DNA of 64,000 nt from Octopus bimaculoides (lineage: Eukaryota). This document shows positions 3,153 to 48,955 of the stretch, in pieces; position 1 is the stretch's first letter, and every line of letters begins with the position of its first letter. The notes beneath the pieces were generated by a model, which was given only the letters and a program-made list of their open reading frames with translations, was not told where the DNA came from and searched no databases. The stretch covers positions 389,654 to 453,653 of the forward strand of contig NC_069005.1 in the NCBI RefSeq assembly GCF_001194135.2, in the 5' to 3' direction. The position numbers were made by a program, and so were the translations under genes.

Positions 3153-3184
3153 AGTTCCTCACGCTGTCTTTGGGAGAGTACCAT
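3153..3184 (-). CDS. PAFAH1B1: First coding exon (coding part) of Lissencephaly-1 / PAFAH1B1; remainder of gene expected left of the window
   Basis: Minus strand reads ATG GTA CTC TCC CAA AGA CAG CGT GAG GAA CT|GTAAGT = MVLSQRQREEL, matching the conserved LIS1 N-terminus (human MVLSQRQRDEL). It has 32 coding nt and a phase-2 donor. No second coding exon (NRAIADYL-like) recognised in 1-3152. Confidence 0.9.
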
Positions 3185-3374
3185 GGTGTCGAAACAGTCA
3201 GCAAGATACACACCACTCGCAACTTTTCAATGCAAAAAAGCTTATCGCTCGTGTATGGAGTGTGTTTCAATTACAAGACGGAGAGAGGAGGGGGGGCTTG
3301 TTGACTTAGTTTAGCTTTAATCCAAATAACATCCAAAACTTAACACTTTTGGTTAGGCCACATTCTCACGAAAT
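3185..3374 (-). other. PAFAH1B1: 5'UTR part of the LIS1 first coding exon (190 nt), preceded by a strong splice acceptor
   Basis: Minus strand TTCTTTTTCTATTTTATTTCAG| acceptor (AG at 3376-3375). This implies a further non-coding exon upstream (higher coordinate). Confidence 0.75.
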
Positions 3375-44700: not shown

Positions 44701-47700
44701 AGTTAAGGAGTTTGAAGGTATTTGTTGCTGTTTTGGTTCTTTTTTTTATCTACAACAAATTGTATTCATCATCATCATTCTTCTGTCTTCTTTTCTATGC
44801 TTGAGTGGGTGGGGTGGGGTTTTTTTGAAGCATATTCTTTACAACTGGATGCCCTTCCTGTCTCCAACCATTACCTGATTCCAAGCTAAGTAATGTTTCT
44901 CTATAGTCAGACATGTTTTTGACAGACTATTGGCAGTGGACATTCATTTACAACAATCCTCTGATGTCAAACAAGGAGACACAAATACATTCACAAATCT
45001 CAACTCTCATGCATCTATACATATATATGACAAGGCTTTGGTTGGCCCGGGGCTATAATAGAAGACACTTCCCAAGGTGCCATGGGAACTGAACCTGAAG
45101 CCATGTGGTTGAGAAGCAAGATTCTTAAGTACACAGCCATGCTTGCACCTCACATTAATGAACTCAAATAATGTCAGTTTGCTTCAAGCTTGTATTGAGA
45201 TTGACAACATTTGGGATTAAAGAATGTTATCTACCCTGGGTCAGTTCATTCAACGAGCAAAAATGAATAATCTCGAGATGGACCAGTCCAGTGTCGGGGG
45301 AACATATATACCACAGAATCTGGGAAACCAGCCTTATGAGCCTTTTTTATTTTTCTTCTTGAATGCTCAAGATCATTTAAAGGGTTCATTGACCCCTTAG
45401 ATATACTTAGCAGTATTTTGTCCATCTTAACGTTTTGAGTTCGAATCCTGCAAAGGCCAGTTTTACCTTTCATCCATTCAGGGACAATAAAATAAGAACC
45501 AATTAAGCTTTAGGGTCAATCTAATCAACTATCCTCCTCCTGCCAAATTCCAGCCCCTGTGCCTTCAGTAGAAACGATTATTGTTGAGGTGAGTTGGCAG
45601 AATCGTTAACGTGTCAGACAAAATATTTAGTGATATTTCTTCCAGCTTGACATTCTGAGTTCAATTCCTGTCGAGTTTGACTTAGCCTTTCATCCTTTCA
45701 GGGTCAACAGAGTACCAGTGAGGTACTGGGGGGAAAACGACAGGGATCCCCTGCTCCTTCCCTTCAAATCTGCTGACCTTTTTGCCTTTCTCTTTTTCCC
45801 TTTAGGTTCCGGTCTTCTCAAGCACAGAATTCTGTCAGGGCAAAACAATGAGGTGGGGCCTGGGCTGGAGCTTTGACGAGAGCGTCTCTTTTACCGTGAG
45901 TACCACTCATCTTGTGTGAGTGAGCGTCTGAGTGTTACTTGTGCTGTTATGGTTGATCTATGGACAGATGTTGCTAGTGAAATGTCTACCCAAACAAATT
46001 AGCTCTCACCAGGGCTTTTTTTTCTCTTTTGCCAAAAATGCTAAGTAACATATACATAAACAAACCAACACTGATTGTCAAGGGGTAGGAAGCATAAACA
46101 CAAAGATATACCCCTACCCACACACATATATAAGCATGTACATATACGGTGGGCTTCCACACAGTTTCTGCCTACCAAATTCATTTACACGGCATTAGTC
46201 AACCTGGGGTTATAGTAGAAGACATTAGCTCAAGGTTCCGTGCTCTGGGATTGAACCTGAAGCCATGTGGTTGCAAAGCAAGCATCTTAATCGCACAGCC
46301 AGTCCTGCATCAGACCGTTGTGCAATTGATGTCCTTTAAATTGTGATTTTGTGTCACGGTTGGCTTCATAAGCCCTTGTCGTGGTTGTGTGGTCATGAGG
46401 TTTGCACCTGTGTGATTTTGTGTTCCATCCCACTGCACAGCATCTTGGACAAGCCTCAAGCCAACCCGTGCCTTGTGTATGAAGTTGGTAGATGGAGACT
46501 GTGTTGAAGCCCATCATATATCTGTGTGTGTGTGTGCTGACATCTGACTTTTCCCCACTCTCATTAATTATTTCCAGTTCCATTTCTTCTTCATCTGTGC
46601 CCACCTCTCCCCAATATATCAATATAGCAATCTTCAAATGTTATTTATTTCTATTTTATTTGGGTTTTTTTCTCTCTTTCAGAAATCTTATTTCAAAGCT
46701 GAAAAGAAAAAAGAGAAAATGCCCCTGGCACTTTGTATTCCAACTGAAATTGCCATTGACTTTCTCACCTTATGCATTCACATCAAAGAACTTTTGCAGG
46801 AACTGAAGGTATTTTCTTTTTCTTTATTAGTTGTTGCTGTGTGGTTAAGAGACTTGCCTCCCAAGCATGTCGTTTTGGGTTCAGTCCTGCTGTACAGCAC
46901 CTTGGGCAAGTGTCTTTACTATATGCCTGGACTGACCAAAGCTTTGTGAGTGAATTTGGTAAACAGAAACAATAAGGGAACTTCATCATCATCATTTAAT
47001 GTCTTCCATGCTGGCAAGAGTTGGGAGGATTTGACAGGAGCTCTCCAGACTCCGATCGTCTGTTTTGGCTTGGATTTTATGGCAGGATGCCCTTAGAGTG
47101 TTCTGGGTGCTTTTTACATAGCACTAGCATGAGTGCATTTTATGTGGCACCGGCACCTGCAAGACAAATACCTCTCAGCTGGGGGAGGGAAGGAGGAGTG
47201 GGGTCGTGGCCATAAAAGACATTCCTGTATTTATGAATGGCCACTGTTTTACTTAGCTTGACATGTCCCGTATGTATATATATATATATATATATATATT
47301 TCATATGTATGTGTTTGTATTACTGTCTTTTTGCTGTAACATGTAAGAGTTGTAAATGAGTATCACTGTTATATAAGCAGTGTCATTCATTTCCAAACTA
47401 GCTGTGCAAAAATATTCCTTTGTTTGGAAACAGGTGAGGGTTGGTGACAGGAAAGACATCCGACTATGGAAATCTACCTCAACAAGACTCCATCTGACCC
47501 ATGCAGGCATGGAGAAACAGATGTTAAATGATGATGATAATTTCCCCCCAAAAAAGAGACAGCTCAATTGGTAGAGCATCAGACAAACTGATTTGTGGTT
47601 AATCCCCCCCCCCTCGTGTATAGATTTGAGATAATGTACAAAAACAATATATTAGAAGAACTGAAATATATTTAAGTCTTACTGTGGGTTAAATATGAAT

Positions 47701-48955
47701 GTGAACACATTCGTTCTCTACTATTAGTGCGTGCAAAAAAGACAGAGTGGTCAATAAACCATGAAATGGTATGTAAAGAAACCTCCCTCACCTTTTGTTT
47801 TTTCTGCATATCAGTTGCATAAAAAGAATGCATTTACATTATTATTTGACCCACAGGCAGGCTTTGCTCTGTTTAAATTTATTCCAGTTCTGATTAAGCT
47901 GTATTTCACTTAAAAATAGATATCAAACATAGTTTATTCTGTATAATATTTGAAGCTAATTAAGTTGACAAAATGTTTAATTAATTGGCAAAGCAGAAAG
48001 GATTCTGACCTTGTCAACTGCAGCCTCAGTCCATGTAGCTGTAAACAGATGAATTTAGCTCTCATGGGGAACAATGTGACTTAACCTGTTCATTTCATAT
48101 TTTATTGAAAACCTTGTCTCACTTTCTTTTCTCTCTTTCTGTCAGATAAACTATGTTGAGACAAAAAGCAACAAATGGATTTTAATCATGAGCCTTTTTG
48201 CAACAGAGAACACTTGGTCTCATCAAAGACGGCAGCGCCGACAAAGACTGCGAGAAGAACAAAGGAAACTTTCACTTGCCAAAGACTGTGAAAAGGCAAC
48301 CCCTTCTTTCAACCCTACCTGTACTTCCTCTTCTTCTTCATCTTCTACCTCTGTCAACTCCGACAGTAAAGTTTGCCAGCCAGGCTTGTCAACTGAATCA
48401 GTTGATGGCAGTGGATGTTGTATAAGTGACTCTTGTGGCACTGGTAAAAAACCTGTGTCCAAAGAGTCTGAAGATGCTGCAGTTGAATCCATTGTTGAAG
48501 AGGAAGCTTCTTCTTCTTCATCAATTGAAACAGTGACAGCAACATCTTCTGCTAAAAGGAAGAGAGAGTTGGAAAGTTATAAAGAGGATGAAGATGGGGA
48601 GACGACTGCAGCATCCAGTAACAAAAGGGGTAGAAGAGGAGAGTTGGGGGTGAGTGGGGGTCAAGAGACTGAGTGTCAGGTTGATTGTACAAGTGAAGGG
48701 GGTAGAGAGAAAGAGGAGTGCAATGAAAATAGAGATGTGCAACCGAAAAGGGACAGGTGCAGCAATGCAGCAGATGTTGCTCGTTGCAGTTTGTCAAAGG
48801 AAAGTGAAGCTAAGAAAGATTATCTCTTTCAGTGCACCATGTTTGTGAAGAGGAAACTCACCTACATGCAGCTGGAGCTTGCATTGGTTGAAGGGGACAA
48901 CAGGGAAATGCTTCATCAGTTATTACAGTTTTTTAGAAATAAACTGTTGCCATGA
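41440..48955 (+). CDS. METTL16: METTL16 RNA N6-adenosine methyltransferase, join(41440..41761,42853..42993,43627..43879,44648..44717,45806..45895,46683..46808,48146..48955), 1812 nt, 603 aa
   Basis: All introns are GT-AG with consistent phases. The protein has MSLNKFMHPRN..., LVPTIPLRLNYIHWIEDL, SAM-binding GIDIG|TGSCCIYPLLG, catalytic DFCMCNPPFY, TEFCQGKTMRW, the Arg-rich ENTWSHQRRQRRQRLR, and C-terminal YLFQC...VEGDNREMLHQLLQFFRN. Confidence 0.96.
42853..42993 (+). CDS. METTL16: METTL16 coding exon 2
   Basis: cacag|GT ACC GGA ...(G)TGSCCIYPLLGHKLNGWKFLATELDEE...DSIT A|gtaaat; 141 nt. Confidence 0.93.
43241..43497. repeat. ~67-bp minisatellite, about 4 units, in METTL16 intron 2
   Basis: Unit GGTGCTTTTTAC(G/A)TGCCACC.GCA....GCCAGTC.....CACTGGCATTGACC repeated. 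Confidence 0.8.
43627..43879 (+). CDS. METTL16: METTL16 coding exon 3 (NPPF catalytic motif)
   Basis: poly-T ag|TT AAG...YDFCMCNPPFY...GGEYQFVNQLIQDSLVLRNRV AG|gtaagt; 253 nt. Confidence 0.95.
44648..44717 (+). CDS. METTL16: METTL16 coding exon 4
   Basis: ctcctag|G ATT TAT ACC = (R)IYTSMVGKKQNLLALKYELRSLK|gtattt; 70 nt. Confidence 0.9.
45806..45895 (+). CDS. METTL16: METTL16 coding exon 5
   Basis: ctttag|VPVFSSTEFCQGKTMRWGLGWSFDESVSFT|gtgagt; 90 nt. Confidence 0.93.
46683..46808 (+). CDS. METTL16: METTL16 coding exon 6 (start of VCR1/KA1-like region)
   Basis: ctttcag|KSYFKAEKKKEKMPLALCIPTEIAIDFLTLCIHIKELLQELK|gtattt; 126 nt, phase 0/0; end resembles human IEKILTDLK. Confidence 0.8.
48146..48955 (+). 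CDS. METTL16: METTL16 last coding exon (VCR1 end, long acidic/Ser-rich linker, VCR2)
   Basis: ctgtcag|INYVETK...ENTWSHQRRQRR...YLFQCTMFV...RNKLLP TGA (48953-48955). Confidence 0.92.
   Translation: MNYVETKSNKWILIMSLFATENTWSHQRRQRRQRLREEQRKLSLAKDCEKATPSFNPTCTSSSSSSSTSVNSDSKVCQPGLSTESVDGSGCCISDSCGTGKKPVSKESEDAAVESIVEEEASSSSSIETVTATSSAKRKRELESYKEDEDGETTAASSNKRGRRGELGVSGGQETECQVDCTSEGGREKEECNENRDVQPKRDRCSNAADVARCSLSKESEAKKDYLFQCTMFVKRKLTYMQLELALVEGDNREMLHQLLQFFRNKLLP

Follow-up and report, generated by a model that had tools for sequence, protein, structure and literature searches.

The window that we analyzed, a 64,000-nucleotide stretch of the Octopus bimaculoides genome, contains two genes arranged head-to-head: METTL16, which is read from the plus strand, and LIS1 (PAFAH1B1), which is read from the minus strand. 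The preliminary description of this DNA had recognized both, and both are real: the LIS1 start exon is backed by its sequence, its splice donor and RNA coverage with splicing at both ends, and the METTL16 translation is identical to that of the RefSeq O. bimaculoides METTL16 isoform X2 (P0001; 603 aa). The two are not paralogues, being respectively a LisH/WD40 protein and a Methyltransf_10 (PF05971) enzyme, and do not belong to a tandem-duplicate cluster. Their start codons are 38,256 bp apart (ATG-to-ATG), a distance earlier read as about 38 kb between the facing 5' ends. That reading was wrong: RNA data reveal non-coding leader exons on both genes, so the transcription starts lie only ~10 kb apart (~30440 on the minus strand and ~40489 or earlier on the plus strand), and ~27 kb of the supposed intergenic span is the first intron of LIS1 (Table 1).

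The minus strand from the ATG at 3184 to the CTG ending at 3152 (ATG GTA CTC TCC CAA AGA CAG CGT GAG GAA CTG) encodes MVLSQRQREEL, which corresponds to the start of the N-terminal LisH motif (MVLSQRQR[DE]EL) and to the short first coding exon of LIS1 orthologues. We estimate that translating 64 kb in six frames would produce any one 11-mer, allowing no more than one mismatch, ~1e-7 times; hence the match is not a chance occurrence. The exon is flanked by a canonical GTAAGT donor after base 3153 and an AG acceptor at 3376-3375, and the 3153-3184 segment noted earlier is merely the coding portion of this internal exon. RNA contigs and raw reads covering it run on into ...AACAAAGCAGTTGCGGATTATCTTAGTGCC, which encodes NKAVADYLSA and matches human NRAIADYLRS. 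The window does not reach this second coding exon of LIS1, nor the WD40 part of the coiled-coil and seven-WD40 architecture, and the RNA confirms the proposal that the start exon is spliced into a LIS1 mRNA.

Further 5', LIS1 has two alternative non-coding leader exons. The major one is spliced at the donor CCAAAG/GTAAGT after 30327 and probably starts near 30430-30440, with read depth fading between 30406 and 30457 and a TATA-like TTTTTATATTTATATC close by at 30470-30455. The minor one, for which the 5' limit in Table 1 is a minimum, uses the donor TTAAA/GTGAGT after 7238. Intron 1 carries many repeats and microsatellites as well as N gaps at 8551-8738, 16055-16313 and 17104-17703; its screened open reading frames (ORFs) yielded no Pfam domains. 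As the 30327-to-3374 splice junction spans all of it, the sequences flanking these gaps are part of a single transcription unit and share its orientation.

The coding exons of METTL16 span 41440-48955 and are seven in number, with all introns of the GT-AG type. The protein contains the Methyltransf_10 domain (E 2.2e-83, residues 3-286) with the NPPF catalytic motif in the form CMCNPPF, finds its best matches in animal METTL16 proteins, and ends in ~45 residues that are conserved across phyla. The leader exon, which may be longer than the minimum given by its 5' limit, is spliced from a G/GTAAGT donor after 40532 to 41414, and RNA also joins coding exon 1 to exon 2 (41761/41764 to 42853/42856). 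A METTL16 model without exon 6 is likewise in frame. The downstream neighbor of the gene is a cytochrome P450, and on this side of METTL16 the octopus sequence runs collinear with Argonauta.

Table 1. Features of the LIS1-METTL16 locus in Octopus bimaculoides (positions in the window)
Feature	Position	Strand	Evidence or content
LIS1 start-codon exon	3153..3374	-	sequence, splice sites, RNA contigs and reads exactly covering the span
LIS1 start exon, coding part	3153..3184	-	MVLSQRQREE and first two bases of a Leu codon, phase-2 split
LIS1 start exon, 5'UTR part	3185..3374	-	
LIS1 intron 1 (~27 kb)	3375..30326	-	RNA junction 30327 to 3374
LIS1 minor alternative non-coding leader exon	7238..7336	-	11 junction reads in RNA run X39; X19 contig with 99 nt past the junction
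LIS1 major non-coding leader exon (exon 1)	30327..30440	-	59 junction reads in RNA run X39; contigs in X25 and X31
Interval between divergent transcription starts	30441..40488	.	~10 kb
Decayed mariner-type transposase fragment	34650..34865	+	Pfam PF01359 (Transposase_1), E 2.6e-11, read-through translation from 34437
METTL16 non-coding leader exon	40489..40532	+	X19 RNA contig, 43 nt 5' of the 41413/41414 junction mapping to 40489-40531
METTL16 first coding exon	41414..41761	+	ATG at 41440; coding part 41440-41761
METTL16 coding exon 2	42853..42993	+	GTGSCCIYPLLG SAM-binding motif region; exact translation match
METTL16 coding exon 3	43627..43879	+	catalytic NPPF motif (CMCNPPF)
METTL16 coding exon 4	44648..44717	+	
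METTL16 coding exon 5	45806..45895	+	end of Methyltransf_10 domain (FCQGKTMRW)
METTL16 coding exon 6	46683..46808	+	42 codons; required for exact match to RefSeq isoform X2
METTL16 last coding exon	48146..48955	+	stop codon included

The interval between the two starts contains microsatellites, a high-copy repeat at 38.1-38.6 kb, a dead mariner element and three unbridged N gaps totaling 590 N (31026-31247, 33160-33517 and 38510-38519), the last of them inside a repeat with a depth of the order of 1e6; none of the gaps falls in an exon of LIS1 or METTL16. Among the ORFs of at least 75 aa between 3.4 and 41.4 kb, those of non-repetitive composition (60 of 82) encode no Pfam domain, and Rfam and tRNA searches returned no matches. 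The exception is the mariner fragment, which was chosen by eye; with its in-frame stop codons it is a decayed transposase, and we rejected it as a functional gene. As far as tested, it is the sole coding remnant, in agreement with the earlier view that no coding gene intervenes. The ratio of observed to expected CpG shows one elevation at 33.25-34.5 kb and another that extends from 39.25 kb to 41 kb, past the start-to-start interval. Values of 1.0-1.5, compared with a median of 0.4 for the window as a whole, occur near the METTL16 leader and shortly within LIS1 intron 1, a pattern that fits unmethylated promoter regions. A blastn comparison (E 1e-5) of the 10 kb upstream of Argonauta METTL16 with the octopus sequence recovered repeat matches only and no conserved non-coding sequence. 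In the three RNA runs examined, too few for a correlation, LIS1 depth is ~9- to 40-fold that of METTL16.

The same divergent pair is found in the scallop Pecten maximus (in locus coordinates, LIS1 ATG at 7929 on the minus strand and METTL16 ATG at 10001 on the plus strand), the brachiopod Lingula anatina (7683 and 10001, likewise oriented) and the hemichordate acorn worm Ptychodera flava (8633 and 10001), with 1.4-2.3 kb between start codons, measured from ATG to ATG and not between transcription starts. In all three, an 11-codon LIS1 exon is followed by an in-frame TAA overlapping a GTAAGT-type donor, which places the LIS1 intron at the same position as in octopus, and this exon heads a complete LIS1 gene of 409 to 417 aa. 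The two genes also bear consecutive locus tags in the gastropods Patella caerulea (SNE40_003115/003116) and Nucella lapillus (ACOMHN_013408/013407). Wider linkage was obtained by cross-matching LIS1 and METTL16 protein searches through locus tags and identical scaffold or chromosome lengths, and both genes were found on a scaffold or chromosome of the same length in Lingula (639,392), Limulus (669,477), the abalone Haliotis rubra (726,537), the chiton Liolophura (36,638,032), Mytilus californianus (115,541,503) and the teleost Parambassis ranga (24,575,694). The expected linkage in other mollusks is present in scallop, gastropods, chiton and mussel, and is broken in the land snail Bradybaena similaris, which has LIS1 and METTL16 on different chromosomes. 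The pair was also not seen in the crinoid Anneissia, where a KSR-like kinase is the upstream neighbor of METTL16 and LIS1 is on a different 42-kb scaffold, and the 10 kb upstream of METTL16 in Limulus and Argonauta contain no LIS1 exon. The pair is accordingly not universal.

Among vertebrates, the gene directly upstream of METTL16 in the pipefish Syngnathus acus is LIS1, in tandem and not divergent, which makes this species the exception to the 5'-5' orientation of octopus, Pecten, Lingula and Ptychodera. Human gene tables place METTL16 (2,405,562) next to PAFAH1B1 (2,593,183), in the order MNT, METTL16, PAFAH1B1. We take the human genes to be divergently transcribed and ~80 kb apart; as in octopus, the ATG exon of PAFAH1B1 is preceded by a non-coding exon 1 and a long intron 1. 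Of the proposed correspondence with human 17p13.3, then, the adjacency stands on the gene tables, and the head-to-head orientation is probable.

The shared divergent arrangement and intron position in scallop, brachiopod and hemichordate support the earlier suggestion that the pair dates to about the bilaterian ancestor. We accordingly regard the octopus locus as very probably a copy of a divergent LIS1/METTL16 pair that goes back to the last common ancestor of protostomes and deuterostomes or further. Judging from the three compact genomes, the ancestral state would have been a tight 5'-5' pair with the start-codon spacing seen in them and a promoter region that may have been shared or abutting. 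In octopus, this unit has been stretched by the insertion of repeats, microsatellites and transposons, giving the long LIS1 intron 1 and the present distance between starts. The pair might have persisted because a break in a short shared promoter region would harm one or both of the genes, each of which is broadly needed, and because a small interval would offer few breakpoints; after its growth, promoter-proximal or embedded regulatory elements may go on coupling LIS1 and METTL16. It is on these grounds possible, and we propose it tentatively, that regulatory constraint, such as the shared or interdigitated cis-regulation suggested in the preliminary description, keeps the two genes together. 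Selection is at most a candidate cause, with the exceptions in Anneissia, Bradybaena and Syngnathus and the lack of a LIS1 exon in the 10 kb upstream of METTL16 in Limulus and Argonauta weighing against it.

Neutral persistence offers a plausible account that we would stop short of calling probable: the ancestral pair might have been kept simply by its tiny interval with few break sites, without shared regulation, the octopus expansion being recent and as yet unbroken. The spacing of the start codons in three phyla, the loss or rearrangement of the pair in crinoid, land snail and pipefish, the failure to detect conserved non-coding sequence when the 5' flank of METTL16 in Argonauta is compared with Octopus, and the disparate RNA depths of the two genes all point this way. 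Against it, most ancestral neighbor pairs have been scrambled over such time, and survival in four mollusk classes, a brachiopod, a hemichordate, a chelicerate scaffold and vertebrates exceeds what is typical; moreover, the human and octopus pairs are intact despite an interval of tens of kilobases. As a class, conserved pairs are also enriched in 5'-5' orientation and co-expression (PMC3514665).

A mis-join of scaffolds at an N gap within the 30.4-40.5 kb region, uniting genes that are unlinked in octopus, could use the unbridged gaps of this interval, especially the one buried in the very deep repeat. We consider it highly improbable, since a random mis-join would have to yield by chance the exact partner and divergence seen in scallop, Lingula and Ptychodera, while the 30327-to-3374 junction unites the left 30 kb and, downstream of METTL16, octopus and Argonauta are collinear. 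Retention at wide spacing (~10 kb between the octopus starts and ~80 kb in human) would suit a genomic regulatory block, in which long-range enhancers of one gene (e.g. neural enhancers of LIS1) lie within or beyond a bystander and would be orphaned by a break. The CpG-rich patches at 33.25-34.5 kb between the starts would agree with this, as would the distal conserved non-coding elements carried as a class by cephalopod metazoan microsyntenies (PMC9023564). Nevertheless, such a block appears unlikely: conserved non-coding elements were not found in the 10 kb upstream of Argonauta METTL16 compared with the window, the compact arrangement in three phyla leaves little space for interdigitated enhancers, and both members of the pair are cellular genes with broad expression, unlike the developmental transcription factors that are typical targets. 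A published table of such blocks has METTL16 as a bystander with other 17p13.3 targets, in a paper in which PAFAH1B1 is unmentioned.

The octopus locus resembles human 17p13.3, the Miller-Dieker/isolated lissencephaly region, in that the same two orthologues are neighbors. It differs in spacing, the octopus starts being ~10 kb and the ATGs 38 kb apart against ~80 kb in human, and in its flanks, with a cytochrome P450 downstream of METTL16 in octopus and MNT in human. Classical bidirectional-promoter pairs, reportedly described by Adachi and Lieber in 2002, have less than 1 kb between starts (e.g. HSPD1-HSPE1). The LIS1-METTL16 pair is similarly divergent, and compact in scallop, Lingula and Ptychodera, whereas in octopus each gene has a leader exon and a strict bidirectional promoter is inapplicable because of the ~10 kb between starts.

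Another parallel is provided by the conserved ancient microsyntenic pairs (CAMPs) of Irimia et al. (2012, Genome Res 22:2356; PMC3514665); conserved 5'-5' pairs are already known in the hundreds. Like these microsyntenic pairs, LIS1 and METTL16 are non-paralogous genes that are adjacent in several animal phyla, with a short ancestral intergenic distance and the orientation in which that catalog is enriched: they are neighbors in octopus, Pecten, Lingula, Ptychodera and Syngnathus, by locus tags in Patella and Nucella, and in the human tables. The literature that we searched catalogs hundreds of comparable pairs and does not name this one, and the names LIS1 and METTL16 are both absent from the supplements consulted from a study of coleoid genomes (Schmidbaur et al. 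2022; PMC9023564). The preliminary description had taken coleoid genomes to have lost much ancestral linkage; in that study, coleoids retain 275 ancient microsyntenies and a scallop 216, about equal numbers. LIS1-METTL16 is thus a real but fairly ordinary case of neighbors kept together since early bilaterian animals. Coleoid metazoan microsyntenic blocks differ from it in requiring at least three genes, and are like it in that the ancient linkage has been kept while the intergenic or intronic span has become enlarged, as reported for the class (PMC9023564).

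Joining the seven plus-strand coding exons on the right side of the window yields a protein of 603 residues that is identical at every position to P0001, the RefSeq O. bimaculoides METTL16 isoform X2, and in which Pfam recovers the Methyltransf_10 domain at residues 3-286 (E = 2.2e-83). The gene also possesses a non-coding leader: one RNA contig carries 43 nt ahead of the acceptor at 41413/41414 that map upstream of the coding exons (see table), next to a G/GTAAGT donor after 40532. Since the length of coding exon 6 is a multiple of three, skipping it in the gene model keeps the frame and leaves 561 residues, making an isoform without this exon possible on sequence grounds. 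The C-terminal ~45 residues of METTL16 (YLFQCTMFVKRK...LHQLLQFFRNKL; 48770-48952, plus strand) are conserved in octopus, scallop, Lingula, crinoid, hemichordate and fish, whereas the ~200 residues ahead of them show no such conservation, a pattern suggesting that METTL16 of invertebrates ends in a conserved module.

On the left side, the minus-strand start exon of LIS1 (PAFAH1B1) encodes an 11-mer for which, allowing at most one mismatch, we estimate about 1e-7 matches to be expected in a six-frame translation of 64 kb. RNA coverage of the complete exon has the same exact limits in assembled contigs from three runs and in the raw reads of a 2026 RNA-seq run, and 3' of the start exon the RNA runs into AACAAAGCAGTTGCGGATTATCTTAGTGCC, which reads in frame NKAVADYLSA (human, NRAIADYLRS). 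The exon is therefore part of the LIS1 mRNA, with the next exon past the left edge of the window. The gene identities and orientations of the preliminary description are borne out. The start exon is not the first exon of the gene, being spliced to a major leader by 59 reads and to an alternative leader by 11, both with canonical donors. As read depth over the major leader dwindles between 30406 and 30457 and a TATA-like run lies beside it, we infer that the main LIS1 transcription start is near 30430-30440; a CAG/CAA-rich imperfect repeat is found ~150-280 bp upstream of this position. These data provide verified 5' gene structures for both octopus genes.

Features of the octopus window; the METTL16 coding exons are joined by GT-AG introns and their translation is that of P0001
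Feature	Position	Strand	Remarks
LIS1 11-codon stretch from the ATG	3184-3152	-	MVLSQRQREEL, then GTAAGT donor after base 3153
LIS1 exon covered by RNA	3153-3374	-	
Alternative LIS1 leader, spliced sequence	7238-7267	-	donor TTAAA/GTGAGT after 7238
Major LIS1 leader, spliced sequence	30329-30358	-	donor CCAAAG/GTAAGT after 30327
TATA-like run	30470-30455		
CAG/CAA-rich imperfect repeat	30600-30720	-	
N gap	31026-31247		
N gap	33160-33517		
Decayed mariner remnant	~34650-34865	+	Transposase_1, E = 2.6e-11, only across stop codons
High-copy interspersed repeat	38112-38640		probably SINE-like
N gap	38510-38519		10 N
METTL16 leader	40489-40531	+	non-coding
METTL16 coding exon 1	41440-41761	+	
METTL16 coding exon 2	42853-42993	+	
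METTL16 coding exon 3	43627-43879	+	
METTL16 coding exon 4	44648-44717	+	
METTL16 coding exon 5	45806-45895	+	
METTL16 coding exon 6	46683-46808	+	42 codons
METTL16 coding exon 7	48146-48955	+	
Cytochrome P450 gene	54773-57368	-	probably extends rightward
Reverse-transcriptase fragment	62250-62615	-	RVT_1, E = 7e-4, under the Pfam cut-off; FYTDD motif

The two 5' ends had been described as facing each other across about 38 kb. This distance holds from ATG to ATG (38,256 bp, ~27 kb of which is LIS1 intron 1) and not for the 5' ends themselves, as the RNA leader exons place the opposed transcription starts ~10 kb apart; 590 bases of the interval are N. None of the N gaps in the window overlaps an exon of either gene. 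Those at 8.5, 16 and 17 kb fall within LIS1 intron 1, and the splice junction from 30327 to 3374 places the sequence on both sides of them in a single, uniformly oriented transcription unit. The three listed in the table lie between the two starts. The 10-N gap sits inside a very high-copy repeat with a DNA contig depth of the order of 1e6, as against 10-60 in the unique flanks, and for this reason no short-read DNA contig crosses it. This repeat is abundant in the RNA runs and has related copies near 4795-4895 of the window and in Argonauta.

The earlier observation that no other coding gene is recognizable between the pair also stands, under a screen that was reasonable rather than exhaustive and leaves room for non-coding RNAs and for small or novel genes: among 82 ORFs of at least 75 aa in the 3.4-41.4 kb segment, the 60 with non-repetitive composition were searched against Pfam and contained no domain. 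A single decayed coding remnant, of mariner type, was spotted by eye. Rfam and tRNA scans returned no matches, and RNA mapping revealed no spliced unique transcript in 35600-40600, where repeats swamp the signal and yield partial repeat matches only. The CpG observed/expected ratio rises to 1.0-1.5 at 27750-30000, 33250-34500 and 39250-41000 (window median, 0.4); these stretches, which flank both transcription starts, may be unmethylated promoter regions. Beyond METTL16, and convergent with it, is a cytochrome P450 gene, recognized by Pfam (p450, E = 3.5e-49) once its exon translations are joined. An identically placed and oriented P450 gene in Argonauta hians indicates that the downstream side of METTL16 is collinear between the two octopods. 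Further to the right, a weak reverse-transcriptase fragment is probably a decayed retroelement.

Comparison of METTL16 orthologue neighborhoods, extended by 10 kb in both directions, recovered the same head-to-head arrangement in three other animals: 1) the scallop Pecten maximus, with a 409-aa LisH_PAC1/WD40 gene (ATGs 2.07 kb apart); 2) the brachiopod Lingula anatina, with LIS1 (2.3 kb); and 3) the hemichordate Ptychodera flava, with a 417-aa gene starting MVLSQRQREEL (1.37 kb). In these three and in octopus the 11-codon exon ends CTG TAA GT, pointing to a conserved LIS1 intron position. Wider linkage was assessed by cross-matching LIS1 and METTL16 protein searches by scaffold length and locus tag. 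The two genes bear consecutive locus tags in Patella caerulea and Nucella lapillus, share a scaffold in Haliotis rubra (727 kb) and Limulus polyphemus (669 kb), and share a chromosome in the chiton Liolophura, Mytilus californianus and the teleost Parambassis. The human genes, which we take to be divergent and ~80 kb apart, are listed in two reviews with METTL16 directly before PAFAH1B1, in the order MNT, METTL16, PAFAH1B1. In the pipefish Syngnathus acus (L004, its METTL16 neighborhood, 1-31830), LIS1 ends 3.4 kb before METTL16 and is directly followed by it and then by an HLH gene, all on the same strand; the HLH gene is probably MNT-like, which fits the human order. The pipefish LIS1 is inverted relative to the invertebrate arrangement, and presumably also to the human one.

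The pair is not universal. It was not seen in the crinoid Anneissia, where a KSR-like kinase lies upstream of METTL16 and a different, small scaffold carries LIS1; the land snail Bradybaena has the two genes on separate chromosomes, and Babylonia has a gene listed as "LIS1 B-like" on a different chromosome from METTL16. Despite the shared scaffold, the 10 kb upstream of METTL16 contains no LIS1 exon in Limulus; nor does it in Argonauta, a comparison limited to that 10 kb and hence uninformative on linkage. A metagenome scan of METTL16 relatives, aimed at non-bilaterians, turned up picoeukaryote contigs with a WD40 gene ~4 kb from a METTL16-like gene. We rejected it as a LIS1 link: it has 22% identity to LIS1 and appears by eye to be of the Sof1/DCAF13 type, and apparent topoisomerase I and DsbA-like genes lie between it and the METTL16-like gene.

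In Lingula, METTL16 is immediately followed, on the other strand, by a CLU/CLUH orthologue with CLU_N, CLU, eIF3_p135 and TPR domains (15537-23108 of L002, the METTL16 neighborhood of this species). Human CLUH, we assume, lies directly beyond PAFAH1B1, a difference that would imply inversion of the divergent pair as one piece, and LIS1, METTL16 and CLUH may once have formed a three-gene block. CLUH is absent from the octopus window.

Given that the same pairing and orientation is found in other species, it is not credible that a chance mis-join in the octopus assembly recreated it. We are highly confident that LIS1-METTL16 is an ancestral divergent pair whose neighborhood is older than the protostome-deuterostome split, which supports and extends the ancient microsynteny with human 17p13.3 that had been proposed. 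Its spacing is compact in three phyla, and the octopus version is stretched, with separate leader exons. The ancestral arrangement would have had a shared or abutting promoter region, and the pair would have persisted because breaks in such a short common region are rare and damaging.

Selective regulatory constraint on the pair can be advanced only tentatively, neutral persistence being about as likely. Active coupling that persists in octopus or human is favored by retention of the pair despite expansion of the interval, by the raised CpG ratio at both 5' regions and by what is generally true of conserved 5'-5' pairs (PMC3514665). On the other side, the pair has been lost or rearranged independently several times and the two transcripts differ greatly in abundance; a further argument against coupling is the failure to detect conserved unique non-coding sequence between octopus and the 10 kb upstream of Argonauta METTL16, the sole cephalopod comparison. 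That the two genes form an actively selected unit, with common promoter-proximal or embedded elements and mis-expression of one gene upon separation, appears unlikely. Were it so, human 17p13.3 deletions or rearrangements that cut the interval and leave PAFAH1B1 intact could still disturb PAFAH1B1.

Deletions in Miller-Dieker syndrome remove both the human lissencephaly gene and the SAM-sensing m6A writer. The age of the neighborhood means that these two genes are old neighbors and not chance ones. The pair also offers a natural series, from 1.4 kb in the acorn worm through 10-38 kb in octopus to a presumed ~80 kb in human, with a tandem state in pipefish and a split one in the land snail, with which to ask if it is shared regulation or breakpoint scarcity that keeps conserved 5'-5' pairs together.

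METTL16/METT10D with PAFAH1B1/LIS1 is unnamed as a microsynteny in the searchable literature, and the supplements of large catalogues may well include it; neither gene name occurs in those of Schmidbaur et al. 2022. By its distribution LIS1-METTL16 is a conserved ancient microsyntenic pair (CAMP) as defined by Irimia 2012 (PMC3514665), while in octopus its spacing exceeds the <1 kb used for bidirectional promoters. With regard to a possible genomic regulatory block, the 10 kb from Argonauta gave matches to repeats alone. Coleoids keep 275 metazoan microsyntenies as against 216 in a scallop, and the intergenic regions of such blocks are enlarged in cephalopods (Schmidbaur et al. 2022, PMC9023564), so that both the retention and the stretching seen in octopus are the expected pattern. 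In itself, LIS1-METTL16 adds another example to a phenomenon that is already well described.
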